Assembly: GCA_002269645.1 (NCBI GenBank)
Contig: NIVC01000755.1
Span: forward strand, 62,001 to 126,000
Source: Macrostomum lignano
Taxonomy: Eukaryota
Direction of reading: 5' to 3'
DNA: 64,000 nt
A program made the translations under genes and the position numbers. The notes below the pieces were generated by a model, which was not told the DNA's origin, did not search any database, and saw only the letters and a program-made list of their open reading frames with translations. How positions within the stretch are numbered: the stretch's first letter is position 1; the number at the start of each line of letters is the position of its first letter. Positions 17,305 through 39,482 of this stretch are shown here, one piece after another.

Positions 17305-17805
17305 ATCTTCCAGAACGACGTTCTCGCCATCAGCTCCTTCGCCATGGAGCTGTACAATAAGCGAATCTGGGGATTGGAGATCACCCTCTCCACTCTGTCA
17401 GTCAAGCGGCAATCCCACGCGGCTGGCCCATGTCCTTCCTCCGCCCTGCGCAGAGCCCTGCTTGGACTCAACCGCAGGGACATCAGGGTCATGGCTGTTT
17501 TGCCAGGCATCGTCACCTCCAGGGAAAATCCGTAGCGAGGAATGTCCATTTTGTCTCTCGCCGGTGTCGAGAATGCAGAGCACGTCATCTGTGAATGCCC
17601 CGCCTTTACACAGGACAGGCTCACCTAACTCGGCTGGAACCCGGACGGACCTCCGACGTTTTTAGGCCCCAGAATCCTGCAATCTCGTCCGCTACCTAAG
17701 GGCACCATGCATCCTCCTCCTGGACTCTCCGGAAAGAGGGACTGCGCTGCGGACACCGGCATCACCGGATCTCCCTGCGCGACTGGGCAACAACGTAACG
17801 CAAGT
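17305..17805 (+). mobile_element. 5'-truncated, degenerate non-LTR retrotransposon 3' end (C-terminal CCHC zinc knuckle; I/LOA/R1-type)
   Basis: Frameshifted translation [13 protein letters not shown]...EECPFC...ENAEHVICECPAFTQDRLT*LG matches the C-terminal Cx2C...HxxxxC knuckle of I-group LINEs; it ends in a short CAAC/GTAAC/GCAAG tail. Confidence 0.7.
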
Positions 17806-19029: not shown

Positions 19030-20244
19030 ATAGAGGGGCGATTCTTAGTTATTAGAGGGGCGATTCTCACGTAATTAGAGGGGGGATTCTAAGACAATAG
19101 AGGGGCGATTCTCAGTTATTAGAGGGGCGATTCTCAGAGAGTAGATTAGAGGGGCGATTCTCAGAGAGTGGATTAGAGGGGCGATTCTCAGAGAGTGGAT
19201 TAGAGGGGCGATTCTCAGAGAGTAGATTAGAGGAGCGATTCTCAGAGAGTGGATTAGAGGGGCGATTCTCAGAGAGTAGATTAGAGGGGCAATTCTCAGA
19301 GAGTGGATTAGAGGGGCGATTCTCAGAGAGTAGATTAGAGGGGCGATTCTCAGAGACTGGATTAGAGGGGCGATTCTCAGAGAGTAGATTAGAGGGGCAA
19401 TTCTCAGAGAGTAGATTAGAGGAGCGATTCTCAGAGAGTGGATTAGAGGGGCGATTCTCAGAGAGTAGATTAGAGGGGCGATTCTCAGAGAGTGGATTAG
19501 AGGGGCGATTCTCAGAGAGTAGATTAGAGGGGCGATTCTCAGAGAGTGGATTAGAGGGGCGATTCTCAGAGAGTAGATTAGAGGGGCGATTCTCAGAGAC
19601 TGGATTAGAGGGGCGATTCTCAGAGAGTAGATTAGAGGGGCAATTCTCAGAGAGTAGATTAGAGGAGCGATTCTCAGAGAGTGGATTAGAGGGGCGATTC
19701 TCAGAGAGTAGATTAGAGGGGCGATTCTCAGAGAGTGGATTAGAGGGGCGATTCTCAGAGAGTAGATTAGAGGGGCGATTCTCAGAGAGTGGATTAGAGG
19801 GGCGATTCTCAGAGAGTGGATTAGAGGGGCGATTCTCAGAGAGTAGATTAGAGGGGCAATTCTCAGAGAGTAGATTAGAGGGGCGATTCTCAGAGAGTGG
19901 ATTAGAGGGGCGATTCTCAGAGAGTAGATTAGAGGGGCGATTCTCAGAGAGTGGATTAGAGGGGCGATTCTCAGAGAGTAGATTAGAGGGGCGATTCTCA
20001 GAGAGTGGATTAGAGGGGCGATTCTCAGAGAGTGGATTAGAGGGGCGATTCTCAGAGAGTGGATTAGAGGGGCGATTCTCAGAGAGTGGATTAGAGGGGC
20101 GATTCTCAGAGAGTGGATTAGAGGGGCGATTCTCAGAGAGTGGATTAGAGGGGCGATTCTCAGAGAGTGGATTAGAGGGGCGATTCTCAGAGAGTGGATT
20201 AGAGGGGCGATTCTCAGAGAGTGGATTAGAGGGGCGATTCTCAG
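19030..20244. repeat. 27-bp minisatellite (GATTAGAGGGGCGATTCTCAGAGAGTG)n just downstream of the desaturase stop
   Basis: Period 27; produces the artefactual (LRIAPLIHS)n ORF 19075..20298. Confidence 0.97.
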
Positions 20245-20318
20245 GAAACAGTAACTATATTTAAAATTAACCAAAAGCTCGGAGTTACGTGACGACAACT
20301 GCTAGCAGAGCAAAGCGC

Positions 20319-23300
20319 TTATCCCGGCATATAATAGGCTTCGAACCACAGCTCTCCGGACTTCTTCAAGGATCTGATAATGTCGGCAAAGGCTGTGCCA
20401 AGCGGTTTCTCAACGTACGGAATGCCGTGCTTGGAGCAGATGCGCTTCACGTGTGGCTGCACCAGCGGATAGGAGTGACGGGGCATCGTTGGGAACAAGC
20501 TGCGGGTTTCAGGTTGGTGAGGTAATTGAAGCTAATGATTACACTGTTGTATGCATACACTGCTTTGTGCGTGTTTAGCTATTGAAGTGTCTATCACTGT
20601 AGTGTGTCACTGAAGTGTGAGTGTCACTGAAGTGTGAGTGTCACTGAAGTTTGTGCGTCACTGAAGTTTGTGTGTCACTGAAGTGTGTGTCACTAAAAGA
20701 TGATCTGTCACTAAATAGCCTGTCACTGAAAGATGATCTGTCACTAAATAGCCTGTCACTGAAAGATGATCTGTCACTAAAGAGCCTGTCACTGAAAGAT
20801 GATCTGTCACTAAATAGCCTGTCACTGAAACATGATCTGTCACTAAAGAGCCTGTCACTGAAAGATAATCTGTCTGAAATTGTCACTGGAGTCACTGGAA
20901 TTGTTTTGACTACAGGAAGCTTAACTAAACAATGCAATCCCAAACTCACTGGTGCTCAATCTGGTAGTTGAGATGCCCGGTGAACCAATCGTTGAAACTG
21001 CCGCCCTCAGCGTTCATTGTGGCTTTCAGCTGCATGGAGAACCAGTCGCGACGCTGATCGCGGTCGATGTCCATGGGGATGTGGCTCATCTGGGTGCAGG
21101 CCACGAACCAGTGCGACTCCAGGTAGCTGGGCAGGTGGGTGAGCAGGAACTTTGATTGTCTTCAATATTATGTCGTTGGGATCAGGATTCCGTCATTGGG
21201 ATCTGGATTCTGTCATTGGGATCTGGATTCTGTCACTGGGATCTGGATTCTGTCACTGGGATCTGGATTCTGCCATCAAGATCTGAAGTCTATCACTGGG
21301 ATCTGGATTCTGTCATCAAGATCTGAAGTCTATCACTGGGATCTGGATTCTGTCATTGGGATCTGGATTCTGTCATTGGGATCTGGATTCTGTCACTGGG
21401 ATCTGGATTCTGTCATTGGGATCTGGATTCTGTAATTGGGATCTGGATTCTGTCACTGGGATCTGGATTCTGTCATCAAGATCTGAAGTCTATCACTGGG
21501 ATCTGGATTCTGTCACTGGGATCTGGATTCTGTCATCAAGATCTGAAGTCTATCACTGGGATCTGGATTCTGTCATCAAGATCTGAAGTCTATTACTGGG
21601 ATCTGGATTCTGTCATCAAGATCTGAAGTCTATCACTGGGATCTGGATTCTGTCATTGGGATCTGGATTCTGTCATTGGGATCTGGATTCTGTCATTGGG
21701 ATCTGGATTCTATCACTGGGATCTGGATTCTGTCATTGGGATCTGAAGTCTATCACTGGGATCTGGATTCCGTCAGTGGGATCTGGATTTTGTCACTGGG
21801 ATTTGAAGTCTATTTCAGCGTCAGATATTGATTTCTATATTTAACTTTTGGATGTTATATGTAAAGAGTGCATAAAAATTTCCCTAGAACCCAGCTTACC
21901 GGGTGAACATGTACAGGGCAAAGGTGCCCCACCAGCTGGAGAAGAAGTGATTGAACACGTAGAAAAACTTGGCAAAAAATGACACGGTCCACATCAGGTC
22001 GCGAAGATTTCGTCGTTTCAGCGTAAAGTACACGTTCTCGAAGTGGAAGTACAGCGGCAGCAGCATCGGGGGTCCCAGCAGCCAGAAGTAGTCGTGCTGC
22101 CAGTTGTAGGGCATGAAGCCGCGCTTCTTCTGACCCCACTCTTTCGGCATTTTGTCTCCTAGCAGGAACACGTACGGCACGCCAATGTCCGGGTCTGTTC
22201 CAACTACATTCGGCTTCGAATGATGCAGAAAGTGACGGAAATTCCACCAGTGCGAGCTGGCGCCTTTCAGATGGCCAACAACCAGTTCGTGACCGATGTG
22301 GTTGAGTCGGCGACTGTTGAACACGCTCAGGTGACCGTAGTCGTGCTGGGCCCAGCCCGCCTGAGAGTTTGAGGATTGACTAAGAGACTTCCTCTCTCCT
22401 CCCTTTCACCTCTCCTCTCTCTCCTCTCACCTTTCCCCTCCTCCCACCTCTCATCTCTCCCCTCCTCTCACCTCTCATCTCTCCCCTCCTCTCACCTCTC
22501 TTTCCCTCTCACCTCTCCTCCCCTTTCACCTCTCTTTCCCTCTCCTCTCCTCCCCTTTCACCTCTCTCCTCTTCCCACCTCTCCTCTCTCCTCCCTCCTC
22601 TCCTCTCTCCTCCCCTCTCTCCTCCCACCTCCCTCCTCTCACCTCTCTTCTCTCCCCTCCTCTCACTTCCTCTTACCTCTCCTACCCTCTCACCTTTTAG
22701 TATTTTCCCTAAAACTGATCTACAATCCAACCCTACAATCGGTCAAAACTTCCGCGATGATCATACCTGAGCTTGAGCGGTGCACAACAGCAGGGCGGCA
22801 GCAACAAAGGTCAACAGATTGACGCCCCAGTGCCACAGGATAAACACGGCAGCCAGCTCAAATAGCCAGCATTGAACCAGATACTTGAAGAAGAAGAAAG
22901 GCTTTGTGGCAAACCAGCCAGACGTCTCGGCTACTTTGCGAAGCTCGCGGAAATCTCTCTGAACTGGTGACTTAAATTTTTATAATGTTTTTAATGATGA
23001 TTACAAGCCAAAATTCTTTATGGAGTTTATTTTTTATAACAAAGAATTGTACTTACTAAGTTATCTTCATAGTCCACAACAACTCCACACTCAAGTGGCT
23101 TCATGTACTTCTCAACCAGTGCCTTGTCATTGTGCAGAGCAACAAATGCATCCTGTTAATAGTTGAATATTATTAAATATAATTACCAGATTATTGTCCA
23201 GCCTAATATTGAATTAGTCATTTGTGTTGGAGTTCATTTAAGATCTTGTGCAATTAAAATTTGACTTTAATTAGCTGAAATTACTGCTATATATTCATAT

Positions 23301-25421
23301 TGTTTAACAAATCATGATATATCAGAAGCTAAGTTCAAATATTAATAAGGTAGCATAGGCCCTATAGGATCATTATTAAACAATTATTAGACAATATACT
23401 GCAAAGTGCTTACATTATATAGAGACCTCTAGAAATGATTTATACTATTTTTTTTTCTAATTCTCCACAATAATAGGGGTCCTATTAAGACTTTTACTTT
23501 ATTATCAAGATATACTCATAGCTACTTTAGGTACATATTTAATATACTTGGTAAAATAGGCCTATATATTAAAGCTGCACTCATAATCATAACTGTAGCA
23601 AGATAGTTCTCATATGATTGTATGCAGTTATTTTGTATCTTATTAGTATGAACACAATCTATAATTACTTATATTTAATCTGTTTATGCAATCATTTTAA
23701 AGTATTCTTTTGTAATATTTTTTCTACTTTTTTTGAAAAAGTAAAAATATAAAACTGGCTTATATAGAAATTAAAAGGAAAGTTTTAAATTACTATATTC
23801 TTATAATTGTAGCTATAAGAGCAATAGCTTTTTTATATGCAAATTTTTAGCTATTATAGATATCCATTTTATTAGTTGTAATAATATTTTATATCCAAAT
23901 ATATAACTAAGACACTATACTTTAGCCTGAACATGCATATAATATAGTTTTCAATGAAAAAGTAATATACCTATATCTAGAAAGTTGTTTTATGACATAG
24001 CTTTACTTAGCAGATAATTGAAATGTTTAGACTTTAACTATTTATTTTCTTTTCTTTTTTAGTGTTTTTTTATTTCTATTTACTTCATTTTTATCCCTTT
24101 GATTTTTAGTAATATAGGCTTATTTCCTATATATTTTTAGTAACTTAGTTGATCAGTTTTATGATATACCTACCTTAGCTAACCTATTACCTATCAGTTA
24201 GATTAGCAAATAAATAGTTCTATATATATGTATATAAATAAAGCAGAATACTACTTGTTTATAATTTAAAAATATATATAGGGCCTATATAGCTTTTTAT
24301 TTAAGTAAAAGGTGAAAAAATAATGATTATGCCTAGGCTTAAGAACTATTTTGCTTATGTTATAGTTTTTTCATAGTGAATTATTTTTTTAAATAATGTC
24401 ATATTTGGTTATCTATTTAATAGAGGCCAGAAAAGTAAGAGTTTTTGTTATCTTGAGTTTATTTATTAAATATTTATTTTGACAAAAATACTTTTACCAA
24501 AAAATCTGTTTTATACTTTTAAATGCTAAAAACTATTATGTTTTGTTTCTTTTTTTGCTGCCACTATGTTAATGTGATTATACATTAATGAGTTAGATTG
24601 AGTAAGGCTAACTAAGGATAAAGAGGCTTATTGTACCAAGGTCAACTGATAGCTATGTAATAATCTATATTATAGCTGACTATGGCTATTGGTAGCATAG
24701 CCATGCACATTTAAAAACTAAAACTAAGTTACATTCACTTAATAATGATTATTAAAATGTATTCAATGCTTATAAAATATACCATATAATATTGTTTTAT
24801 TTCAATTTAATATGATAAAATTTTGTTATAACCATGACAATAGAATACTTTCAATCCTAAAAACTTGATTAAAATTCAACTTAATACTACTTTTTCCCCA
24901 ACTTGGCAAAGCTAACTTTTTCACTAAATACTTATTTATTACAACCAAATAGTGTCAATAATTAGATACAATACTTGAAATAGATATTATTAATAAACAA
25001 ATGATTAATATAATTACATTTTTATAGATAAAAAGGCTTTTTATGCATTACTAGAAATTAAATTGGTATTAAGCAATGAAATATTAATAATACTAATAAT
25101 AGAACCTGAATCGAATAGAACTACTAAAGTGGTATGACATAAATAATTCCATATACTAAAAATGGTTTGTTTGTTTGTATGAACTGAAAATAAAATAGAA
25201 AAAAACTGCTAGATAAAAAACTCGATCGAATTACTAGTAATTTTATCTTATGCACATACCGTTGCGTCTTCTCCAGAGTAGGACCCAAGAAGCTTAGCCC
25301 CACCAGGGTGTCTATGCATGAAGGTGGTAACATCATAAACTTTACCATGAATGACAATAAGCTTTCGCTTGCTATCCTTCTTGCTGTATTCCTTAATAGA
25401 TTCTGTCGTAAACTTTTCCAT
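20319..25421 (-). CDS. FADS2: Front-end (delta-5/delta-6, FADS1/FADS2-like) fatty acid desaturase with N-terminal cytochrome b5 domain, 426 aa, 6 exons
   Basis: Exons 25421-25260, 23152-23057, 22970-22767, 22360-21900, 21126-20950, 20499-20319 have GT-AG boundaries and join in frame (1281 nt). Motifs: HPGG heme-binding, His boxes HDYGH, HFLHH and QIEHH, and C-terminal LFPTMPRH...[17 protein letters not shown]1 versus FADS2 orthology cannot be decided by eye. Confidence 0.95.
20590..20900. repeat. Short-unit intronic minisatellite (TGTCACTGAAAGATGATC / TGTCACTAAATAGCC)
   Basis: Fills desaturase intron 5. Confidence 0.9.
21172..21815. repeat. 20-bp intronic minisatellite (GTCA[CT]TGGGATCTGGATTCT)n
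   Basis: Fills desaturase intron 4. Confidence 0.95.
22385..22700. repeat. CT-rich low-complexity tract in desaturase intron 3
   Basis: Directly visible. Confidence 0.9.
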
Positions 25422-26406
25422 TTTACTTGGAAATAATATATTTAGTGATAAAATGTAGTAAGAAACAATCAACGAGATTACCCAATCTACGATAAACTAA
25501 CAAATTACTAGCTAGAGTGCATCATTGCTAAGCGTGGCCGTGGAATTTATCGCGCCATGTCCGTTGTCAGATGTATCCAAGGTAAGCGCAAATGAAATGT
25601 GTTTTAACAAATAGTAGCTTAATTTTACGCATACATTTTTTTTTCATTTTTCTGGTTAAGATCTATTTTTATTACTAGAAAATTTTGTAAATTTTATGAT
25701 CAAAAGAAACGAAAATTTATCTTTTAGAAAGTAAAAACGTTGAAAATACAAAAATATACAGTCGAATTACAAAATTGTTGGAGCTCAAGCTTGACCGTGT
25801 TTTGTTAGAGCTAAAGAGTGAGCCTGCAGCTGGCTTGCATAATGTGAAATTATGGGTGCCTTAATTACAAAATTCCAAAAACCTTTGATTAATTCTTGGC
25901 CTCAGATTAATAACAGCAAATTAGCTATAATAAATTTGCTTAATAAAAAAGCTGCGATCTGATCTCCTAAGCTACTCCTAGCTGCTTGCTGGCCAAGCAT
26001 GACCTGCAGATTGCCGAGCTACCGGTGACTAGAAAGTCTGTACTTACACAGTGACCGAAACAACAGAGATAGGGTGCTGCTTCTGCACTCGGCGTCGAAT
26101 TTTCTGATTGGACGAGTCCTCTGGGGATGACTATAGCTCGACTCTGATTGTCAGAGCTCCACCCCAAAAACCATATTCAACTGGTGACCCCAGGGAATGC
26201 TTGACATGTGTTGTTCATAAAATCATAAAAACAGCTAAAGCAATTAAAGAGATCGATAAATAAAAACATTATAGCGTAAGAGCCCGCGGTTAGGGCTGAG
26301 GCGCTTGAACGTATCAAAGAAGAAATAAAGGGGGTTGAGTGCAGATAAGATAGAAAGGGTTGATTGTGCGTGGTTGAGAAAAAGAGGCGAGCGAGATCGA
26401 AGAGCC

Positions 26407-26474
26407 GGAGAGCAACGGCCTGCGCCTCCCCGAGGTGCCCTCCGGAGGACCTCAAGGCCCACGAAATGCAGTCC
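26407..26474 (+). ncRNA. HDV-like self-cleaving ribozyme at the 5' end of the Ingi-like LINE (partly decayed)
   Basis: P1 GGAGAGC 26407-13 / GCCCTCC 26437-43; P2 GGCCTGC 26417-23 / GCAGTCC 26468-74; P3 GCC/GGT; L3 TCCCCGA; P1.1 CC/GG 26444-45; P4 GGACC-TCAA-GGCCC; J4/2 ACGAAAT with candidate catalytic C26462. One mismatch each in P1, P2 and P4. Confidence 0.75.
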
Positions 26475-26747
26475 AGCAACGGGCCCTTCCCCGCGAGGCC
26501 CAGCACCGCAACGCAGTCTCTTTGCCACCCTGCCGATTAAATGCCTAGCCGACGCCTGAACCAACCCGCCGAGCCTCAACGGCGGGCCCCCGGCGGCGCG
26601 AGCCGCACCCGGCGGTCCGCGCGCGCGGCCCCCCAGTAGCCTGCACCTCCTGCAACTCAACGCAGAGGGCGTCGCCTCAAGATGCCCGAATTGTGCAAGC
26701 TGCTGCTGGACCTGCGCGTCGACGTGGCGTGTCTGCAAGAGACCCAC

Positions 26748-27165
26748 TTGACGTACTTGACTTAGCTGCTGGACTGTCCCGGAGGGGGACACAGCGGGAA
26801 GGCGCGGACTTACATTCCGCTAATTCCTGAACGGCCGACGCATCGCTATGAACGGAGGGTTGGCGCCGCCCAGGGAGGTCCCTCAGTGTCGCCAGCAGCT
26901 ATGGTGCTCTCTGGAAAGGATCGCAGTTCAACCCTGCGGGTGGCCCGGAGGTAGCGCATGAGCTGATTAAAGTTTTCGGGTTCGCACGCTTCAGTATAGA
27001 TGTCTGTGGCCCGAGGTAAGTGAGTCTGGCTCGCATCAAGGCGCGACAGATGCTGAAGAAGTGCTCAGCGGTTTCGTCCCCTGAGTTGCAAAGATGGCGT
27101 TGGTGGCGTTGCCCTGCAGGTACTGGTGCCTGGAGAAGCAGCCGTGGCCTGAGAGGGTCATGGTG
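26748..27165 (-). mobile_element. Nested antisense 418-bp 5'-truncated LINE 3' fragment with a 13-bp target-site duplication
   Basis: TSD GCAAGAGACCCAC at 26735-26747 and 27166-27178. Minus strand encodes MTLSGHGCFSRH...CNSGDETAEHFFSICRALMRARLTYLG and ends in an AAGTCAAGTACGTCAA tail. Removing it restores VACLQETHTTEGRDPCLPGFNAIWR. Confidence 0.9.
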
Positions 27166-29845
27166 GCAAGAGACCCACACCACCGAGGGACGGGATCCGT
27201 GCCTGCCGGGGTTCAACGCAATCTGGCGCCACCGACAGAGCGGCCGGCGCTCCGGCGGCCGCACGCGCGGAGGAGGCGTTGCAATCCTCATCCGCGAGGG
27301 GCTGCGCTTCGAGATGCTGCAGGAGCGACCCTGCGCCCCCGACAATGTCACCACGGAGGGGGCCGGCGTCCGGGTTTTCCCCTCTGAAAAGAGCGTCGAG
27401 AGCCTGGACATCCACTACCTCTACATCCCACCGATCAGAACGGCTGAAAGCCTGACCGCGTGCAGCGCTTCAGCCTCCAGCACCTCCCGTCCGGCGCCAA
27501 CACGGTGATCCTGAGCGACCTGAACGCGAACCATCCGGCCTGGGATCCCGAATCGCTACGCCTACGCCCTACGAGGGCCTACGCCCGTGAGCATGTCGCC
27601 GTCAGCCGCCTCCCGCAAGACCGCAGGACGCGAGACCTCCGACGCGAGAACTTTCGCAGCAGCGCTTCGGGAGCCGGCGCTGACAGCCATGGGAGCAGAG
27701 ACTTTGGAAGCCGTTCTTGCACCGCGAGCTGGACAGGGCTCTCCGCTCCTTCCCGGTCAGGAAGGCCTCAGGACCCGATGAGATCTGCGCCGAACACCTG
27801 CAGCACCTCGGCGCTGCCGGCCGCCGGGCGGTCCTGCAGCTGATCAACGCGTCCTGGACCCAGGGGGGAGGTCCCCGCGGCGTGGCGCCGTGCCCACGGC
27901 GTGCCGATCCTCGAGAAGGGCAAGCCGGCCGATGAGATCGGCTCATACGGCCGATTGCACTCACCTACACCCTGGCCAAGCTGGCCGAGCGTCTGGTTCA
28001 AGCGCTGCTGGTGGGCCGAGTCCCGGCACCTGCTGCACCCCGACCAAGCCGGCTTCCGCAAGCGACGCAGCACCGAGGACCAGATTGCCCGGCTCACCCA
28101 GCTCATCAGCGACGGCCACCAGGCGGCCACTGCCAGGCGGACGGCCGACTTCCGGCCACGATACCGTCTGGAAGCAGGGCCTGCTGCACAAGCTGCACAA
28201 CGCCGGCATCCCAGCGGCCGTGGTCCGCTGGCTCAGCAGCTACCTGGCCGATCGACGTGCTGCCGTCAGGGTGGACGGCGCGCTGAGCAGCTGGCGGCTC
28301 TTCCGCGAGGGCCTGCCACAGGCAAGTGTCCTTGCCTCTCTGCTCTTAGCGCTGTACATCAACGACCTGCCTGAACACCTTCCGTCCGACTGCACGCCGT
28401 TCCTCTACGCCGACGACCTGGCCATCGCAGTGCAAGGCCAGACCGTGGAGGAGGCCGAGACAAAGGCGCAGGCTGCGATCGACGCGGTCTCCGACTGTGC
28501 GATCGAGTGGAGGATGGAGCTGGCGCCGAACAAGTGCGCGGCATCCTCGTTCACCACCACCGCCGGAGAGGCCAGCCGCGAGCTGCATCTGCGGCTGAAC
28601 GACGCTCCGCTCTCGATGGACCACCAGCCGCGCTTCCTCGGCGTCATGCTGGACCGGCTGCTCAGCTTCACGGCGCACGCCGCCAACGTCGCAGGCCGCG
28701 CCCGCTCCCGCTGCGGCGTTCTGGTGGCGCTGTCTGGCAGCAACTGGGGCGCCAAGCAGAACGACGTGCGCCAGCTGTACACGGCCTACGTGTGGCCGGT
28801 GCTGGAGTAAGCTGCCGGCGCTTGGATGCCGACGGCCTGCGCTTGGATGCCGACGGTCGGAGGTGCTGGAGCGCGAGGCTGGGCTGCCGCCGATGGCTGT
28901 CCGTGCGGAGATGCACGCCGGCCTCCTCCACGAGCGCGCCCTCAGGCCGCCGCCCGACTACCCGCTGCGCGCCTGCGCGGCCAGCGTCGGCCCGCGCTGC
29001 CGCCTCCAAAGCGCCCGCGGTGACGAGAGATGGCAGCCAGCGTCTGCAGCGCTGCGGGCGTGGGCCGCTACCCGCGAGAGCCCGTCCACGCTGTCCCGAC
29101 GAAAACTCGCTGGGCTGACCTGGACTCCGTCACCTTCGGGCTGCAGCTGGCCTCCCCGACCTCGCGGGGGACCTGCCGGAGACGGAGCGTCGAAGGACGG
29201 CATCCTGGACGGCGGCAGCGGCGCCCTGGTCGAGCCCAACACCACGCTGTGTGTCGCTGCTGACGTCCAGTTTCCACGCCGAGCTAGTGGCCATCGCTGA
29301 GGCCCTCCGGTGGGTGCTCGCGGCCCCAGACCCTGCAGAGCTGTTGCCGGTCCGCATCTGCTTGGACTTCCTGAGCGCGCTTACCGCGCTCACGTCCGGC
29401 GCCGGGTCGACGGGCGCCACCATGACCGACGCCATCTGGGCCAGCCTCGCCGACCTCGTGGCCCGGGGAACCTCAGTCCACCTGCAGTAGGTGCCTGGCC
29501 ACGCGGGAATCCCCGGCAACGAGGCCGTGGACGAGGTCGCCAAGCGAGGCTCCACGCTGGCGCAAGGCGCCGCGCTCATCCCGTTGGCTGCTGCGCAGGC
29601 TGCCGTCCGCCGCCACTGCCTCGCCCGCTGGCACCAGACCTACATACAACGCGGCGGCCACCGAGGCGCCGAACACGAGCTCCTGCCTGCCGCCTCCGCC
29701 GACGAGCGACCTCACGCGGCGGCAGGAGCGGCTGATTTGCCAGCTGCGCGCCGACCGCTGCCCGGCCCTGCGGGGCTTCCAGGCCGCCATCGGCGTTGAT
29801 GTGGCCCCCACCTGCCGCTTTTGTGACAATGGAGAGGAGACACCA

Positions 29846-30172
29846 GGGGTGGAGTGCAAGGCTGAGGAAAGAGGCGATATTGAAGAGCCAATCAGAAGAC
29901 AGCGAGGGAGAGAGATAAGAAAAATAAGACTGAATTAGACAGAGAGGGAGAGAAACCAGAGTTTCAACAAATACAAGGGGGTGGAGTGCAAGGCTGAGGA
30001 AAGAGGCGAGATTGAAGAGCCAATCAGAAGACAGCGAGGGAGAGAGATAAGAATAATAAGACTGAATTAGACAGAGAGGGAGAGAAACCAGAGTTTCAAC
30101 AAATACAAGGGGGTGAAGTGCAAGGCTGAGGAAAGAGGCGAGATTGAAGAGCCAATCAGAAGGCAGCGAGAA
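29846..30172 (+). repeat. ~2.4 tandem copies (period 132 bp) of a dispersed repeat family
   Basis: Units start GGGGTGGAGTGCAAGGCTGAGGAAAGAGGCGAGATTGAAGAGCCAATCAG at 29846, 29978 and 30110. Related copies lie at ~26325-26406 (+) and ~40195-40375 (-). Confidence 0.85.
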
Positions 30173-31046
30173 GGCAATTTTCGTTTTTTTTCCTGGCTGA
30201 TTTTGCGCAGTCTTAAATATAAAAAATTGATTCGGTGTTAGAAGCTAAAATCTCAATGCCATGCAATATGCGGATATAGAACATAAATCAAGTTTCCTTT
30301 ATCGATCAATTTTCACTATTAGCAAACAGATTTAATTAAATATTGACAGCAGTAAATAGATTAGTCTCTAATTGACTGTCTAAAATCAATAAAAAAGCGA
30401 TCAGTTACTAAAATAACTGGGAGTTTATTTCTGTTCAGAAAAACACTGCGATGGAAATGCGATGAAAAGCTTTCAGCTAGAATAAAAAACGACGAGTCTA
30501 TAAATAATATGGCTCAGATTGCTTTTTGTTATAAATACTAGGATATAAACTTGATTGATCCTCACTGTTTGTGCTGCCTATATATATGTGCCGAATTTAT
30601 ATATATAAATTGCCTATTGTTATTTAATGCGCTATTTGGATTGCCCAGATGCATATTTGGCCCAGATTCTGTGTTAGGGTCATATATCATACTCATCTTT
30701 GACAAAGTTCTGCGAACTCAGCTGCCTTATCAACGCATTCCGCATGCCGAAACTGCGCGCATGTAATCGGATTGGCGTCATGCCACTAAGCTGCTTTATC
30801 TATAAATTCTGGCCATGACAATGACTGCCAGGTCACCAGTGTGTATGATCGTAGCTGCTCCCAATTTTAGTTAATCTGAGGTGCGGATACTGTATAGTCA
30901 AGATTTGAATTACGATCTTACACTTATAATTAGTGCGCAGAGTGATCAGTTTTATCGTTGCAGAACGTATATGTTGCAGTTTTATAGTTGCATCATCCGC
31001 TCCCCGAGTAACCTAGAAAACCCCAGAAAAAGTGCTGATAAACTAT

Positions 31047-31737
<691 letters not shown>

Positions 31738-31999
31738 AAATAAATTATAAATAAATTGTAAATAAATTAATGTGCAAATGTTTGTAAGGCGTGCAAACTA
31801 TATCTATTATCCTAGTAACCGTCGCAAACAAAATATTTGTCGATATCTCACGTTTAATTTTATTTTTGGTTAAATTTTATATCGACAACAAGTTCATAAT
31901 TTGGATAGTAAATCAGTCAGTTTAGTCAAATAGAATCGAGCTCGGTGCCTTCCGCAGGCTCCCAACGGACAGCCTTATCAGAGTTGTGTTGCAAGCACG

Positions 32000-34547
32000 T
32001 CAAACGCCGCCGACCCGAACCAGGCCAATCAGTCGGCCCAGCTTCCTGTCGACGGAGATGAGGGCATTCAAGATGCGCCGTTGCTCGCCAAACTGTCTGG
32101 ACCCGGTTCGTTTGCCAAATCTGGGAAAATTGGGAACAGTCAACATAATGATCATTTTGTTTTGTAGGCTTTATAGTCTAATTTGGTCCATTTGTTTTTG
32201 CTATATTTATACTGGTACTTAAAAGTGCATGGTCAATGTAACCATGTCAAGGCTGGAGAGCCAAGCTAATGAGCGAATTGAGATGCTGTTGAGATAGAGT
32301 TGTCGGTTCGTAGGCACGAACTCCGTCTGTTCAGCGTTTCATTTTCTTTTGACACGTTTAAAATTTCGCTTGAAGTTGCGTCTTGTATCTCCCAGTGGGA
32401 CCGAGTCCCGCATGTTTCATGCTTTCTTATCATCTTTAACCATCATCTGCCTCTAATTAAATTACTTTCCTCTGTCATCTCTCCCTATTCCTCTGGTCAT
32501 TGTCTTCCTCCTCTCTTATCCCCTCTCTCTCATCTCCCTCTCTTTCATCTACCTCTATCTCATCTCCCTCTCTCTAATCTCTCTCTCATCTCCCTCTCTC
32601 TCATCTCCACTCTCTAATCTCCATCTCTCTAATCTCTCTCTCTCATCTCCCTCTCTCTAATCTCCCTCTCTCTAATCTCCCTCTCTCTCATCTCCCTCTA
32701 TCTCATCTCCCTCTATCTCATCTCACTCTCTCTAATCTCTCTCTCATCTCCCTCTCTCTCATCTCCCTCTCTCTCATCTCCCTCTCTCTAATCTCCCTCT
32801 CTCTAATCTACCTCTCTCTCATCTCCCTCTCTCTCATCTCCCTCTCTCTAATCTCCCTCTCTCTCATCTCCCTCTCTCTAATCTCCCTCTCTCTAATCTC
32901 CCTCTCTCTAATCTCCCTCTCTCTAATCTCCCTCTCTCTAATCTCCCTCTCTCTAATCTCCCTCTCTCTAATCTCCCTCTCTCTAATCTCCCTCTCTCTC
33001 ATCTCCCTCTCTCTCATCTCCCTCTATCTCATCTCACTCTCTCTAATCTCTCTCTCATCTCCCTCTCTCTAATCTCCCTCTCTCTAATCTACCTCTCTCT
33101 CATCTCCCTCTCTCTCATCTCCCTCTCTCTAATCTCCCTCTCTCTCATCTCCCTCTCTCTAATCTCCCTCTCTCTAATCTCCCTCTCTCTAATCTCCCTC
33201 TCTCTAATCTCCCTCTCTCTAATCTCCCTCTCTCTAATCTCCCTCTCTCTAATCTCCCTCTCTCTAATCTCCCTCTCTCTAATCTCCCTCTCTCTAATCT
33301 CCCTCTCTCTAATCTCCCTCTCTCTCATCTCCCTCTCTCTCATCTCCCTCTATCTCATCTCACTCTCTCTAATCTCTCTCTCATCTCCCTCTCTCTCATC
33401 TCCCTCTCTCTCATCTCCCTCTCTCTAATCTCCCTCTCTCTAATCTCCCTCTCTCTCATCTCCCTCTCTCTCATCTCCCTCTCTCTCATCTCCCTCTCTC
33501 TCATCTCTCTCTCTCTAATCTCTCTCTCATCTCCCTCTCTCTAATCTCCCTCTCTCTAATCTCCCTCTCTCTAATCTCCCTCTCTCTAATCTCCCTCTCT
33601 CTAATCTCCCTCTCTCTCATCTCCCTCTCTCTAATCTCCCTCTCTCTCATCTCCCTCTCTCTAATCTCCCTTTCTCTAATCTCTCTCTCTAATCTCTCTC
33701 TCATCTCCCTCTCTCTCATCTCCCTCTCTCTAATCTCTCTCTCATCTCCCTCTCTCTCATCTCCCTCTCTCTCATCTCCCTCTCTCTCATCTCCCTCTCT
33801 CTAATCTCCCTCTCTCTCATCTCCCTCTCTCTCATCTCCCTCTCTCATCTCCCTCTCTCTCATCTCTCTCTCTCTAATCTCTCTCTCATCTCCCTCTCTC
33901 TAATCTCCCTCTCTCTAATCTCCCTCTCTCTAATCTCCCTCTCTCTAATCTCCCTCTCTTTAATCTCCCTCTCTCTCATCTCCCTCTCTCTAATCTCCCT
34001 CTCTCTCATCTCCCTCTCTCTCATCTCCCTCTCTCTAATCTCTCTCTCTCTAATCTCTCTCTCTCATCTCCCTCTCTCTCATCTCCCTCTCTCTCATCTC
34101 CCTCTCTCTCATCTCCCTCTCTCTCATCTCCCCCTCTCTCCCTCTCTCTTTTATCTTTCGTAATTGGTACCTTAAAAAAGTTCTTTTTTAGTCTTATATA
34201 AAATAATAATCTATTCTACAAAACCTTATGTCCAGTTAAAAAGATAATCTTTTTAGAAAATCATCGCGTATTAACAAATAAAAATTCACAAATTTAACTC
34301 TTTTTTCTCACCGCTGTCGCCCAAGCAGCTTCAGATAGGCCTCCAGCTCTTTCATGTAGAGCTTGAACTCTTCAATCGATTTAAAATGCTCCGGTTTTAC
34401 AGGTGGCTCCAGCTGCCTCTTCCTTGCGAATAAAATTTCGCCACCTCCATAGTAACCAGCCGAGTCTACTGCAGACGGATAAGCAAGCGCGTGCTCAGTT
34501 GCCATAGCAACAACTAACAAGAACAGAGCAGCCGGAGAAAGCGACAT
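32000..34547 (-). CDS. npf: Neuropeptide Y/F (NPF) precursor, 118 aa, 2 coding exons
   Basis: Exon 34547-34312 encodes signal peptide MSLSPAALFLLVVAMATEHALA...RKR-QLEPPVKPEHFKSIEEFKLYMKELEAYLKLLGRQ-cg. A phase-2 intron falls in the penultimate Arg, the conserved NPY/NPF intron position. Exon 32120-32000 continues a-FGKR...*. Mature peptide is 36 aa ending RQRF-amide. A probable 5'UTR exon ends at 35380. Confidence 0.93.
32520..34150. repeat. 12-bp CT-rich repeat (CTCTCT[AC]ATCTCC-type) filling the NPF coding intron
   Basis: Directly visible; source of the (REIRE)n ORFs. Confidence 0.96.
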
Positions 34548-34649
34548 TGAATAGCGTGGCGACAATAGCGGACGATGTTCACTTGATGATAAGAATTTTC
34601 TTCTGAAAAGGTTTTTTGAGGTTTGGCGCTAAATTCCTCTCAAGACCTA

Positions 34650-35322
34650 CAATGGCGACAAACTGAATATAATAGCACCAAACTGATGACAAATGGCGCC
34701 AAAATGAGGTCAACTGGTGCCAACCTGAGGATAATGGCGCCAAAATGAGGTCAACCAGCGCCAACTTGAGGACAAATGGCGCCAACTAAGTACAACGGCG
34801 CCAAACTAGGGTTATTAGCGCCAAACTAGGGTTATTAGCGCCAAACTAGGGATAATAGCGCCAAACTAGGGATAATAGCGCCAAACTAGGGATAATAGCG
34901 CCAAACTAGGGATAATAGCGCCAAACTAGGGATAATAGCTCCAAACTAGGGATAATAGCGCCAAACTAGGGATAATAGCGCCAAACTAGGGATAATAGCG
35001 CCAAACTAGGGATAATAGCTCCAAACTAGGGATAATAGCGCCAAACTAGGGATAATAGCGCCAAACTAGGGATACTAAGAACTATCCCTAAGACTATTCC
35101 TAAGGCCAAACTAAGACTATTGGCGCCAAACTAGGGAAAGTGGCGCCAAACTAAGGCTATTGGCGCTAAACTAAGACTATTAGCGCCAAACTAGGGAAAG
35201 TGGCGCCAAACTAAGACTATTGGCGCCAAACTAGGGATATTAGCGCCAAATTAGGGATATTAGCGCCAAACTAGGGATATTAGCGCCAAACTAGGGATAT
35301 TAGCGCCAAACTAGGGATATAC
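34650..35322. repeat. 20-bp minisatellite (GCGCCAAACTAGGGATAATA)n in the NPF 5'UTR intron
   Basis: Directly visible. Confidence 0.93.
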
Positions 35323-35494
35323 CAAACAAAGTTCGATGGCGCCCAACTGCATCGCGTAGAAATAAAATATTCAACTTACCCTTGTCTGTGCTGCACCCAC
35401 TAGGCAGATGTCCTGAAGCTGACTGACTGATTCCCTTCTTATGCCTCGCTAGCTAACGTCGGAATGTGAAAGCGCCTCGGATACAGAGGCTGAG

Positions 35495-35560
35495 AACTTC
35501 CTTTTATTAGTTCTCGTCACGTAGGATGAATTCCTCTCTCAGCCAATAGAGTTTGTCGAT
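35495..35560 (-). promoter_or_regulatory. Putative NPF core promoter (inverted CCAAT, CRE/E-box-like TACGTGAC, TATA-like TAATAAAAG)
   Basis: Motifs occur in the expected order 120-170 bp upstream of the 5'UTR-exon donor at 35380; motif-only evidence. Confidence 0.35.
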
Positions 35561-35659
35561 AGCATTAATCCCATATTTTCTCTAGGACAGCTGCGATTCA
35601 ATAAATAGAAACTGAACCTTTTCATCTTTCGAGACTTAAATTTATCCCGATTGAGTGAG

Positions 35660-38600
35660 GAGGGACTCAATTCCCCGGTTGGATAGGGAGGGACTGAATT
35701 CTCCGGTTGGATAGGGAGGGACTAAATTCCCCGGTTGGATAGGGAGGGACTAAATTCCCCGGTTGGATAGGGAGGGACTGAATTCCCCGGTTGGATAGGG
35801 AGGGACTAAATTCCCCGGTTGGATAGGGAGGGACTGAATTCCCCGGTTGGATAGGGAGGGACTAAATTCCCCGGTTGGATAGGGAGGGACTGAATTCCCC
35901 GGTTGGATAGGGAGGGACTTAATTCTCCGGTTGGATAGGGAGGGACTGAATTCCCCGGTTGGATAGGGAGGGACTTAATTCTCCGGTTGGATAGGGAGGG
36001 ACTGAATTCCCCGGTTGGATAGGGGGGGACTGAATTTCCCGGTTGGATAGGGGGGGACTGAATTCCCCGGTTGGATAGGGAGGGACTGAATTCCCCGGTT
36101 GGATAGGGAGGGACTGAATTCCCCGTTTGGATAGGGAGGGACTGAATTCCCCGGTTGGATAGGGAGGGACTTAATTCTCCGGTTGGATAGGGAGGGACTG
36201 AATTCCCCGATTGGATAGGGAGGGACTGAATTCCCCGGTTGGATAGGGGGGGACTGAATTCCCCGATTGGATAGGGAGGGACTGAATTCCCCGGTTGGAT
36301 AGGGAGGGACTGAATTCCCCGGTTGGATAGGGAGGGACTGAATTCCCCGGTTGGATAGGGAGGGACTGAATTCCCCGGTTGGATAGGGAGGGACTGAATT
36401 CCCCGGTTGGATAGGGAGGGACTGAATTCCCCGGTTGGATAGGGAGGGACTGAATTCCCCGGTTGGAAAGGGAGGGACTGAATTCCCCAGTTGAATAAGG
36501 AGGGACTGAATTCTCCGGTTGGATAGGGAGGGACTGAATTCTCCGTTTGGATAGGGAGGGACTGAATTCCCCGGTTGGATAGGAAGGGACTGAATTCCCC
36601 GGTTGGATAGGGAGGGACTGAATTCCCCGGTTGGATAGGAAGGGACTGAATTCCCCGGTTGGATAGGAAGGGACTGAATTCCCCAGTTGAATAAGGAGGG
36701 ACTGAATTCCCCGGTTGGAAAGGGAGGGACTGAATTCCCCAGTTGAATAAGGAGGGACTGAATTCCCCGGTTGGAAAGGGAGGGACTGAATTCCCCGGTT
36801 GGATAGGGAGGGACTGAATTCCCCGGTTGGAAAGGGAGGGACTGAATTCCCCAGTTGAATAAGAAGGGACTGAATTCTCCGGTTGGATAGGGAGGGACTG
36901 AATTCCCTCAACAACTGCCAGCCGGAAAACTGCCAGCCGACAATTGCCAGCCGACAACAGGCAGCCGGAAAACTGCCAGCCGACAATTGCCAGCCGACAA
37001 CTGCCAGCCGACAACTGCCAGTCGACAACTGCCAGCCGACAACTGCTAGCCGACAACTGCCATCCGACAACTGCCAGACGACAACTGCCAGCCGAGAAAA
37101 CTGCCAGTCGACAATTGCCAGCCGACAATTGCCAGCCGAGAAAACTGCCAGTCGACAACTGCCAGCCGACAATTGCCAGCCGAGAAAACTGCCAGCCGAA
37201 AACTGCCAGCCGACAATTGCCAGCCGAGAAAACTGCCAGCCGAAAACTGCCAGCCGACAATTGCCAGCCGAGAAAACTTACAGCGAGAAAAACGCTAGAT
37301 GTACGCCAGACAAAGCGTTTGTACGCCGGAATTTTCCGGCGTATACTACACCTTCCGCAATATGGCATTCAGGATCTAGCTAGAAAGTAGACAGCTTTGT
37401 TTACTGTTTAATAAATCAGTTAATTATTCAGCAAAAACAGGTTGCCATTGCATTGTTACAGAAATCAGTTAGCCTAGCTACAAGTTGTTTTGTTTTATCG
37501 CCATCAAAAGTTCGTAAGCTTGTGCGGCATGTGCGCGAATCAGAGCTGGCAACTTTCGGCTCCTGCACGAACATCTTAGTTCAAATTTTGTATTTTAGGT
37601 AGCCTTTGCTCTTTCTTTGAAAGCTTTATTTAAGTAAAGTAATTTACTAGACTTATCTAGGATTGCGTCATATAGCAATTGCAATCGCAAATTAAATAAT
37701 AAAGTAAATGAACTTTCAATACAAAAATATTTACAATAGGCATTACAGAATAGAATGCCTTCTTCACATATACACTTCTAATGGAAATCTGAAAAGATTA
37801 CGAAAGGGAAGGGCGACATTTAATGCTACTCCACAAGCCTTTTGCTAGCCAAACAGTTTCGTGCTTTTTACTTAGCTAATAAGTAGGCTACAGTAGATTC
37901 AATTAGCTAGAACTTGTCGGCTGGCAGTTGTCGACTGGCAGTTTTCTCGGCTGGCAATTGTCGGCTGGCAGTTGTCGACTGGCAGTTGTCGGCTGGCAGT
38001 TGTCGGCTGGCAGTTGTCGGCTGGCAGTTTTCGGCTGGCAGTTTTCTCGGCTGGCAATTGTCGGCTGGCAGTTTTCGGCTGGCAGTTTTCGGCTGGCAGT
38101 TTTCGGCTGGCAGTTTTCTCGGCTGGCAATTGTCGGCTGGCAGTTGTCGACTGGCAGTTGTCGGCTGGCAGTTGTCGGCTGGCAGTTGTCGGCTGGCAGT
38201 TTTCCGGCTGGCAGTTGTCGGCTGGCAGTTGGGGTGCTCCCTAAATTCCCCCGGTTAAATAGGGAGGGACTAAATTCCCCCCCGTTAAATAGGGAGGGAC
38301 TAAATTCCCTCGGTTAAATAGGAGGGACTAAATTTCCCCCGTTAAATAGGGAGGGGCTAAATTCCCTCGGTTAAATAGGAGGGACTAAATTTCCCCCGTT
38401 AAATAGGGAGGGGCTAAATTCCCTCGGTTAAATAGGAGGGACTAAATTTCCCCCGTTAAATAGGGAGGGGCTAAATTCCCTCGGTTAAATAGGAGGGACT
38501 AAATTTCCCCCGTTAAATAGGGAGGGGCTAAATTCCCTCGGTTAAATAGGAGGGACTAAATTTCCCCCGTTAAATAGGGAGGGGCTAAATTCCCTCGGTT

Positions 38601-39025
38601 AAATAGGAGGGACTTAATTTCCCCCGTTAAATAGGGAGGGACTAAATTCCCCGGGTGGATAGGGAGGGACTAAATTCCCCCTGGTTGGATAGGGAGGGAC
38701 TAAATTCCCCGGTTGGATAGGGAGGGACTAAATTCCCCGGTTGGATAGGGAGGGACTAAATTCCCCCGGTTGGATAGGGAGGGACTAAATTCCCCCCGGT
38801 TGGATAGGGAGGGACTAAATTATCCGGTTGGATAGGGAGGGTCTAAATTCCCCCGGTTGGATAGGGAGGGACTAAATTCCCCCCGGTTAAATAGGGAGGG
38901 ACTAAATTCTCCGGTTGGATAGGGAGGGACTGAATTCCCCGGTTGGATAGGGAGGGACTAAATTCCCCCGGTTGGATAGGGAGGGACTAAATTCCCCGGG
39001 TGGATAGGGAGGGACTGAATACCCC
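35660..39025. repeat. 28-bp minisatellite (GGATAGGGAGGGACT[GA]AATTCCCCGGTT)n, split into 35660-36908 and ~38240-39025
   Basis: Same unit in the same orientation on both sides of a foldback-like insert. Confidence 0.95.
36909..38240. mobile_element. Foldback-like non-autonomous element: inverted arms made of ~13-14-bp tandem repeats around a ~630-bp unique core
   Basis: Left arm (AACTGCCAGCCGAC)n 36909-37277; right arm is its reverse complement (GTCGGCTGGCAGTT)n 37914-38230. No clear TSD. Confidence 0.65.
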
Positions 39026-39482
39026 GGTCGGGTAAGGATTTTCTCTGTAAAATTTCTTCCCCAAAAGAATAAAAAAATCTCAACATAAAATACCGATGCA
39101 TCGGAGATATACATGTGCGCAGCTTCTCTAGAAGGGGAGTAGTTTTGCTTCATCTAGCGGCAATCGCTCACCTGAGTACGACCGTATAACTGCCATGACC
39201 TCGCTCCCCTCCTTAACTGAACTGAATGCAAGAGTTTCCCTTCTGAAACTTCCTTTATACATAATTAATGTCAATACTATACATAATACATATTACTAGC
39301 GTATTGCTTAAGTGAGAAACTTCCTATCAGTCATTTTCGCATGGCAACCAGCCATAGACTGTTATTTTATTACACGTAGGCGATTTGCTCACCTATACAC
39401 ACCGAGAGGCAATAAATCTTCTAAGCCTTTAGCCGCATCATTTGAGTCGTTAATCAGTGAACGCTTAGCAGAAATCAGCGCC

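Follow-up and report, generated by a model that had tools for sequence, protein, structure and literature searches.

A decayed LINE inserted in a host tandem repeat

The window, meaning the whole stretch of 64,000 nucleotides of Macrostomum lignano DNA that we analysed, carries a LINE with copies of a host repeat on both of its sides. Positions count from the first letter of the window.

~26320–26406: diverged partial 132-bp unit on the 5' side of the LINE, identified by alignment to the 132-bp repeat
26407–29845 (+): decayed LINE of 67–70% GC with APE endonuclease, RT, RNase H and the start of a C-terminal zinc knuckle, identified by composition, tblastn with the protein P0001, and Pfam
26748–27165 (−): nested insertion of 418 bp in the endonuclease region, made of another LINE's 3' end in reverse orientation
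29846–30170 (no strand assigned): host 132-bp tandem repeat, 2.5 units, at the 3' junction, identified by TRF, repeat families D1 and D2, and alignment A1

The LINE forms a GC-rich island, with 57–70% GC versus ~30–45% in the surrounding sequence. Its best protein match is P0001, an M. lignano 'RNase H domain-containing protein' (E 7.6e-284), to which tblastn aligns 26566–29842 in nine pieces and three frames. Pfam recognises RVT_1 and RNase_H on the window pieces, and Exo_endo_phos, RVT_1 and RNase_H on P0001. The domains stand in the order APE, RT, RNase H, zinc knuckle, in a copy that is frameshifted many times. Together, tblastn and Pfam support a LINE of APE-RT-RNase H type with a C-terminal zinc knuckle. 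The claim of a flatworm family, made in the first-pass annotation of this DNA, agrees with the best match of the LINE to P0001 and with a match of the 5' region to a second M. lignano protein, P0121.

P0121 is a cytochrome b5/desaturase gene model, and it was the only protein returned by a six-frame search of 26398–26700, in a match that leaves the candidate ribozyme described below uncovered. The model holds antisense pieces of the window LINE (or of a paralogue) together with the cytochrome b5 exon at 25240–25420, which places the host as M. lignano or a species very near to it.

Several lesions show that the LINE copy is dead. Besides the frameshifts, an internal deletion of ~730 bp has removed P0001 residues 191–434 at ~27555–27577 of the window, and the element stops at P0001 residue 1177 of 1222, inside the C-terminal zinc knuckle, at ~29845. 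The nested insertion that interrupts the endonuclease region is bordered by a 13-bp direct repeat, GCAAGAGACCCAC, at 26735–47 and 27166–78 (direct repeat D7), and its reverse translation resembles P0001 residues 1170–1198, in the C-terminal zinc-knuckle region (E 2e-4). The frameshifts, nested insertion, deletion and 3' truncation make the earlier view of a decayed copy plausible. A search of the 64-kb window for a second copy of the Macrostomum LINE found none.

The label 'Ingi-like', also from the first-pass annotation, is compatible with the domain set of the LINE and with the 2A motifs of its relatives. The set of APE, RT, RNase H and zinc knuckle is also present in other clades of the I group. 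We sought an NPGP (2A-like) motif in all frames from 26466 to the endonuclease, and in P0001, and found none; a 2A-like reading of ...ADA*TNPPS... at ~26545 was dropped, as it needs too many changes.

The 5' boundary of the element can be placed to the base. Similarity of the flank to the 132-bp host repeat runs to ...GAAGAGCC (26406) and is lost from 26407 on. The diverged 5' repeat unit is traceable to ...GAGGCGAG(CGAG)ATCGAAGAGCC at 26406, past which the repeat would read AATCAGAAG and the window reads GGAGAGCAA. Because repeat similarity stops at 26406 and the sequences diverge there, we take G26407 as the first base of the LINE. A target-site duplication is not definable, because the 3' end of the LINE is truncated.

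An HDV-like fold on the first 68 nucleotides of the LINE

The 68 nucleotides at 26407–26474 (+), GGAGAGCAACGGCCTGCGCCTCCCCGAGGTGCCCTCCGGAGGACCTCAAGGCCCACGAAATGCAGTCC, contain the complete order of HDV elements, P1-J1/2-P2-P3-L3-P3'-P1'-P1.1-P4-J4/2-P2', as a nested double pseudoknot. Its parts are listed here together with features shared by four related LINEs (L003, L006, L011 and L013) that are described below and that, with the window copy, make up a family of five.

26407–26413 (+): P1 5' strand, GGAGAGC; six of seven pairs with 26437–26443, with a mispair A26411×C26439
26414–26416 (+): J1/2, AAC; two or three bases here in all five family members
26417–26423 (+): P2 5' strand, GGCCTGC; six of seven pairs with 26468–26474, with a mispair C26419×T26472
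26424–26436 (+): P3, GCC/GGT with one G·T (strands 26424–26 and 26434–36), around L3, TCCCCGA
26437–26443 (+): P1 3' strand, GCCCTCC; directly after P3, as in the HDV topology
26444–26445 (+): P1.1 3' strand, GG; pairs with C26429 and C26428 of L3
26447–26460 (+): P4 hairpin, GGACC-TCAA-GGCCC; strands 26447–51 and 26456–60, with a mispair A26449×C26458 and loop TCAA
26462–26467 (+): J4/2, CGAAAT, with the candidate catalytic C26462; C-N-R-A of the published descriptor
26466–26468 (+): ATG over the J4/2–P2 junction, at which the LINE ORF probably starts; placed alike in L006, L011 and L013
26468–26474 (+): P2 3' strand, GCAGTCC; its first base is the G of the ATG, likewise in L006, L011 and L013

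All of the pairings that the first-pass annotation had assigned to P1, P2, P3, L3, P1.1, P4 and J4/2 can thus be drawn at 26407–26474. It had also placed the start of the fold exactly where host-repeat similarity stops, and the junction 26406/26407 agrees: the first base of the ribozyme is the first base of the element, in the one insertion examined.

We compared the fold with the published descriptor of HDV-like ribozymes (Luptak lab, RNArobo supplement; PMC4870747). P1 opens with G26407–C26443, a G paired to a pyrimidine as the descriptor has it, and P1' is followed by a purine (G26444). L3, TCCCCGA, fits six of the seven positions of T-Y-Y-H-C-G-(N)-Y, its last base being A26433 and not Y. 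J4/2 reads C26462-G-A-A, which fits C-N-R-A, and then A-U ahead of P2'. The P4 hairpin is flanked by a lone unpaired A on each side, A26446 and A26461. The descriptor is broken at about seven places, namely the three mispairs (P1, P2 and P4), the G·T in P3, the final A of L3, and the extra A26446, A26461 and T26467. The descriptor asks for a P1 of 6–7 bp, a P2 of at least 6 bp and a P4 of at least 5 bp, all free of mispairs, and for a P3 of three Watson-Crick pairs; the window copy departs from it in all four helices. Its mispairs look consistent with the decay of a copy. The earlier claim of a full HDV fold with three repairable mismatches therefore stands for its pairings and not for the word 'full', given the broken descriptor and the score from Rfam reported next.

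Base pairing is at chance level and the catalytic core is above it

Pairing is poor evidence in itself. A pairing-only descriptor, which tolerates a single mispair in any of P1, P2 and P4 (up to three in all) and includes CC/GG and CNRA, finds ~1.0 match per 3.4-kb shuffle of LINE composition, or ~4 per window, so base pairing with three mismatches is at chance level and the first-pass annotation's reliance on pairing is not upheld. The same descriptor matches at 28670–28768 and at four places in a 28-bp satellite at 36063–36272; these matches are spurious and occur at the chance rate. Such numbers favour chance resemblance, the HDV-like fold being an accident of a GC-rich LINE 5' leader with no ribozyme in its past, as does the fact that two alternative solutions can be drawn for P2 and P4.

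With Rfam at its gathering thresholds, the whole window yields no match. In E-value mode, RF00094 aligns end to end to 26405–26488 with P1 from 26407, at 16.9 bits versus a gathering score of 50 (E 3.5 over 4227 families in 301 nt, or ~8e-4 for RF00094 alone by our arithmetic). The end-to-end alignment from P1 at 26407 agrees with the fold; the score and the broken descriptor count against it. RF00094 was built from the HDV virus's own ribozymes, and it also misses L003, L006, L011 and L013. Minimum free energy folding of 26407–26474 and of wider intervals gives z of −0.1 to −1.2 (z = −1.0 for 26407–26474, with another structure preferred), a measure that is uninformative for a pseudoknot.

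The catalytic core, unlike pairing alone, exceeds chance. Its 5' half (P1 with G..Y, P3, L3 as TYYHCG, and P1.1) is expected 0.029 times per 3442-nt shuffle of LINE composition and 0.00045 times per 300 nt, or ~1e-5 per position, and here it begins on the first base of the LINE. That position, and the presence of the conserved L3 and J4/2 letters, both argue against a chance resemblance. One other match to the core motif, at 45653/45684–45733, is AT-rich, adjoins satellite and has no LINE, and we take it as chance. A scan with the 22-nt core in metagenomes gave three matches, all in bacterial coding sequence, ...PGLPEVRSGDDL..., which are not ribozymes.

Four related LINEs begin with the same fold

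We looked for the fold in relatives of the LINE, which are contigs of more distant LINE proteins (34–43% protein identity) from metagenome eukaryotes. Four of them, L003, L006, L011 and L013, carry a double pseudoknot of the HDV type at the LINE 5' end. In L003 (protein P0016) the fold at 359–424 satisfies the published descriptor with zero mispairs, with P1 GCATCAC:GTGGTGC, P2 GGAGAGC:GCTCTCT, P3 GCC:GGC, L3 TTCCCGC, a P4 of 5 bp and J4/2 CGAA, and it sits at the switch from AT-rich gypsy-like pol sequence to the GC-rich LINE. Reading the GGAGAGC of L003 as P1, as in the window, is wrong, since it is the P2 5' strand. L006 (P0017) has at 60–130 P1 GGTTGTC:GACAACC, P2 GGTGC:GCACC, P3 GCC:GGC, L3 TTCACGT, a P4 of 6 bp and J4/2 CAGAAU. 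L011 (P0005) has at 71–143 P1 CTGGGAC:GTCCCGG, P2 GACAGTC:GGCTGTC, P3 GCC:GGT, L3 TCAACGC, a P4 of 7 bp and J4/2 CCAAAU. All helices of L013 (P0008), at ~780–856, are perfect, including an 8-bp P2, GACAAGCC:GGCTTGTC. In both L011 and L013, P1 opens with C and not the usual G, and P1.1 has a single pair.

The five members share more than their helices. P3 is GCC:GGY in four of five and ACC:GGT in L013, and the G·T of the window recurs in L011, whose ORF is intact. L3 reads T-Y-(C/A)-(C/A)-C-G-N in all five, its final base being Y in each of the four relatives and A in the window. A P4 of 5–8 bp lies at the same place in every member, with one unpaired base ahead of the catalytic C. J4/2 is C-N-R-A throughout, and it is extended to C-N-R-A-A-U in the window, L006, L011 and L013.

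Among the other relatives, L001 and L002 are 5'-truncated, and no HDV-like fold was found at the apparent 5' ends of L004 and L012, a point against the ribozyme. L005 and L007 share a conserved 5' hairpin that matches weakly to the covariance model R1 described below (E 0.005 and 0.25), with the C-G of L3 lost in L007.

We aligned the five sequences on their structure, padding them with N so that MAFFT kept the register and placing the helices by hand. In this alignment 94.4% of cells are paired, versus 38–48% in slid controls, and both sides have changed in 19 of 28 pairs (P1 6/7, P2 7/8, P4 4/8), values reached by none of 500 shuffles. Hand placement biases these pair counts towards the structure, and the model searches serve as the independent check. 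Two pairs of P3 are invariant and the third is GC, GU or AU. The inner pair of P1.1, between position 3 of L3 and the base after P1', shows a compensated change: three members (window, L003, L006) have C-G there and the other two (L011, L013) have A-U.

For the independent check we used two covariance models. R1, built from L003, L006 and L011 only and limited to the nested helices P1, P3 and P4, detects the unseen L013 copy with 52 bits (E 2e-11 to 7e-12), a sequence whose 8-bp perfect P2 is a helix absent from the model. When both strands of the whole window are searched with its filters switched off, R1 ranks 26407–26474(+) first, with 18.3 bits and E 0.0082, in a full-length match (model positions 1–78) followed by a next-best E of 0.27. 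R2, built from the four relatives, also places the candidate first (26407–26475, 14.5 bits, E 0.083), ahead by only ~1 bit of its runner-up at 17540–17603(−) with 13.3 bits. The runner-up scores 12–13 bits with the two models without the P3/L3 core, and we regard it as chance. The E-values for the window refer to 128 kb searched; counted over the single site at which one expects a LINE ribozyme, they would fall by about four orders of magnitude by our arithmetic.

The near-equal R2 score of a plainly spurious site can be counted in favour of a chance resemblance. It has to be set against a model built without the window sequence that ranks 26407–26474 first, end to end, against homologous covarying structure in four related LINEs, and against an embedded AUG found in four of five members including the window (see below). 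On this balance we judge it quite unlikely that the fold is fortuitous. The case for a ribozyme rests on position, relatives and an independent model, and not on pairing; on this footing the first-pass annotation's HDV-like ribozyme at a LINE 5' end is borne out, the relatives having covarying helices and their model finding the window copy.

The relatives also bear on how the 3' half of the fold is drawn. One could keep the same ribozyme and form P4 from 26447–50/26471–74 (GGAC/GTCC), J4/2 from A-G-C26477-A-A, and P2 from 26417–22/26480–85 (GGCCTG/CGGGCC). This arrangement absorbs A26449, T26472 and C26419 into pairs and leaves a single mispair, in P1, and its 3' half is the one used by the RF00094 alignment. 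Its J4/2, however, is C-A-A, one base short of C-N-R-A, whereas in every relative y-C-N-R-A(-A-U)-P2' comes straight behind a compact P4, matching the fold of the feature list, and it is that fold that both R1 and R2 align. On comparative grounds we reject the alternative 3' half, which we consider very improbable; the 3' half listed above is preferred because it shares the embedded AUG (y-C-N-R-A-A-U-G) with the relatives.

A start codon embedded in the fold

The sequence y-C-N-R-A-A-U-G is common to the window, L006, L011 and L013, and its G opens P2'. An AUG consequently lies at the J4/2–P2 junction in each relative of this set (L006 ATG124, L011 ATG135, L013 ATG847). AUG135 of L011 opens an uninterrupted ORF that passes a 2A-like motif (LLLLRAGIHPNPGP) and next a cysteine-rich stretch before it reaches the endonuclease. 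ATG26466 of the window is in frame with MPELCKLLLDLRVDVACLQETH, with two stop codons between. All four relatives carry the 2A motif, which in the L006 and L013 contigs lies in another frame; L003 has an open frame that leads from the end of the ribozyme via AUG 509 to the 2A motif.

The embedded codon raises a further reading, namely that selection has kept a real, conserved structure for its work as a 5' leader, cleavage being absent or secondary in this lineage. Such a leader might present the start codon, support cap-independent initiation, or act as an internal promoter like Pr77 of L1Tc. An AUG built into the J4/2–P2 junction in four of five members, opening an intact ORF in L011, would suit this role, as would the P1 that starts with C and the lone P1.1 pair of L011 and L013; the 77 nt of L1Tc are both promoter and ribozyme (PMC3383444). 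Yet the letters that are conserved are those of the catalytic core (the C-G of L3 and the C-N-R-A of J4/2), which a mere leader does not need, and the window insertion starts on the first base of P1, as a cleaved template would predict. One structure could fill both roles, and a leader role with cleavage absent or secondary seems to us unlikely.

We tentatively suggest, as a possibility, that the window copy belongs to an undescribed, widespread sub-family of HDV-like ribozymes heading metazoan APE-RT-RNase H LINEs, several of them with 2A, in which the start codon lies at the J4/2–P2 junction.

Comparison with known LINE ribozymes

Ribozymes of the HDV-like type at the 5' end of a LINE are a known device, of which the present case is a new example. 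They are known in six LINE clades, R1, R2, R4, RTE, Ingi (trypanosome L1Tc) and LOA (PMC5786205), and those of R2 and L1Tc/ingi cleave just upstream of the base with which they begin, which confirms the precedent invoked in the first-pass annotation (PMC3774820, PMC4035085).

The ribozyme of L1Tc (L1TcRz, in Pr77 of Trypanosoma cruzi), taken with its ingi-clade relatives, resembles the window candidate in being HDV-like and in heading an APE-RT-RNase H LINE, there one with a single ORF, of which it forms the first ~77 nt. It cuts just upstream of the first base and so frees the element from co-transcripts (PMC3185411, PMC4035085). An N-terminal 2A-like motif is present in ingi and L1Tc, and the relatives of the window LINE likewise carry an N-terminal 2A, whereas the Macrostomum copy is without one (PMC3708506). 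Unlike L1Tc, the host here is a flatworm and not a trypanosomatid, and the AUG lies inside the ribozyme; the likeness described here is one of fold and position.

R2 elements of insects and other animals likewise begin with a double pseudoknot of the HDV-like type, which processes a co-transcript. Few core nucleotides are conserved among R2 ribozymes and J1/4 and P4 vary, in a study that also compares R2 of the planarian Schmidtea mediterranea (PMC3774820). R2 differs in its restriction-like endonuclease, its insertion specific to 28S rDNA and a P1 that is often partly 28S sequence; the window LINE is APE-type, lies in a satellite repeat and has a P1 made wholly of element sequence.

The sea-urchin drz-Spur ribozymes share with the window family the order of elements, an L3 (TTCACGT) identical to that of L006, an s4 of GT and a J4/2 of CGAA. 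They differ in fitting the descriptor strictly, in having neither extra bases next to P4 nor an AU behind CNRA, and in lacking an evident embedded AUG. In the flatworm Schistosoma mansoni, as proposed for the window LINE, a self-cleaving ribozyme that heads non-LTR retrotransposons at their 5' end sets the RNA 5' end, but these ribozymes are variants of twister, a class other than HDV-like (PMC8501958).

We found no paper that joins HDV-like ribozymes with Macrostomum, consistent with the first-pass annotation, which knew of no description of such a family with its own ribozyme. Our literature search likewise found no HDV-like ribozyme described in a flatworm LINE other than R2.

Interpretation and significance

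Taken together, we consider it likely that 26407–26474 represents, in mutated form, a genuine HDV-like ribozyme with which an M. lignano APE-RT-RNase H LINE begins at its 5' end. Following established HDV-like and LINE biology (PMC3774820, PMC4035085, PMC5786205), we infer that an active master copy would be transcribed from any upstream promoter, within a longer RNA that includes host sequence. The nested double pseudoknot would fold during transcription, and C26462 of J4/2 would catalyse the cut of the bond 5' of G26407. LINE RNA would then start with the first base of the element and, once released, would act as mRNA and as template. If LINE RNA begins exactly at the first base, a full-length insertion should start at P1. 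Since AUG 26466–26468 lies over the J4/2–P2 junction, the cleaved ribozyme would be the whole 5' leader of the ORF, and it may have a role in translation.

The copy in the window is probably inactive. It departs from the family pattern at A26411, C26419/T26472, A26449 and A26433, or ~6% of its 68 nt, a deviation in line with the rest of the element; the mispairs in P1, P2 and P4, the non-consensus last base of L3 and the dead LINE behind the fold all point to inactivity.

The finding extends the range of LINEs known to be headed by HDV-like ribozymes to a model flatworm that is free-living and to a group of related LINEs of animals. It would explain how a LINE without an obvious promoter obtains full-length RNA from its own first base. 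A covariance model seeded with the five-member alignment can serve to annotate LINE 5' ends that RF00094 misses. Should the proposed sub-family hold true, the 5' leader would consist of the cleaved ribozyme alone, with self-cleavage coupled physically to the initiation of translation; the recurrent AUG within the ribozyme offers a concrete, testable link between cleavage and translation.

Insertions, repeats and genes around the window LINE

The LINE that carries the HDV-like ribozyme copy is interrupted within its endonuclease region by a 418-bp insertion, and identical copies of a 13-bp direct repeat, GCAAGAGACCCAC, stand on its two sides. Read on its reverse strand, the insertion encodes a zinc-knuckle-like C-terminal piece (LCNSGDETAEHFFSICRAL...), which aligns with the C-terminal end of P0001, the M. 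lignano protein that best matches the window LINE itself. The insertion has the appearance of a LINE from another family, truncated at its 5' end, that arrived later and produced the 13-bp repeat as its target-site duplication.

Features of the window LINE and its surroundings (window positions)
25240-25420 (-): cytochrome b5 exon (...GEDAT) of a front-end desaturase gene
26748-27165: nested insertion (26735-27178 with its repeats)
28814-28855: 21-bp unit, GCCGGCGCTTGGATGCCGACG, tandemly duplicated (two copies) in the part of the LINE that follows the RT domain
Within 20000-40000: 27-bp and 20-bp tandem arrays
31049-31737: GTCT microsatellite
32511-34140: 15-bp tandem array
35659-36907: 28-bp tandem array, with a related form at 38241-39025
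36911-37271 and 37914-38231: 14-bp arrays in opposite orientation

The cytochrome b5 exon and the LINE are divergently oriented and about 1 kb apart. In P0121, an M. lignano cytochrome b5/desaturase gene model, antisense LINE fragments are strung together as 'exons' ahead of the cytochrome b5 exon, an arrangement with the look of an artefact of annotation. Because P0121 leaves out 26700-27175, its locus may be without the nested insertion, or the gene model may have spliced the insertion out.

Tandem arrays are densely packed around the LINE, between 20000 and 40000. The 28-bp unit is self-complementary and gives rise to false HDV-descriptor matches. Elsewhere in the window, the two covariance models, R1 and R2, each give 17540-17603 (-) a score of 12-13 bits, because it contains a P1-like stem and ACAAAAUGG; being without the P3/L3 core, it was set aside as a chance match.

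5' regions of related LINEs

Two relatives with an HDV-like fold, L011 (71-143) and L013 (780-856), open P1 with a C, forming a C-G base pair, rather than with the usual G. Both have TCAACG as L3, and in both P1' is directly followed by U-C, so that P1.1 consists of only one A-U pair. The base preceding P1 could instead pair with the U after P1' (G70.U108 in L011, A779-U818 in L013), and the predicted cleavage site is therefore ambiguous by one base in these copies.

The metagenome LINE copies on L003 and L004 are each nested within another retroelement, preceded respectively by:
L003 1-300: Ty3/gypsy-like pol fragment
L004 1-170: endonuclease fragment of another LINE

The 5' region of the related LINE on L012 (120-470), upstream of the endonuclease ORF, comprises about three tandem copies of a unit of about 120 nt (…CAGATGAGGGGCTGCCAGTTCATCCTC…GGCCGTTGAACACTCTG…), and the HDV-like fold is absent from it. 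A conserved 5' leader is common to a Littorina saxatilis LINE (L005 2215-2282) and a freshwater-metagenome relative (L007 123-190). It contains a perfect 7-8-bp hairpin stem, CCACCAC(A)...(T)GTGGTGG, and is matched weakly by R1 (E 0.005 and 0.25, respectively); an L3-like C-G is present in L005 and lost in L007. This leader could represent an HDV-like element that has diverged or degenerated, or something else.
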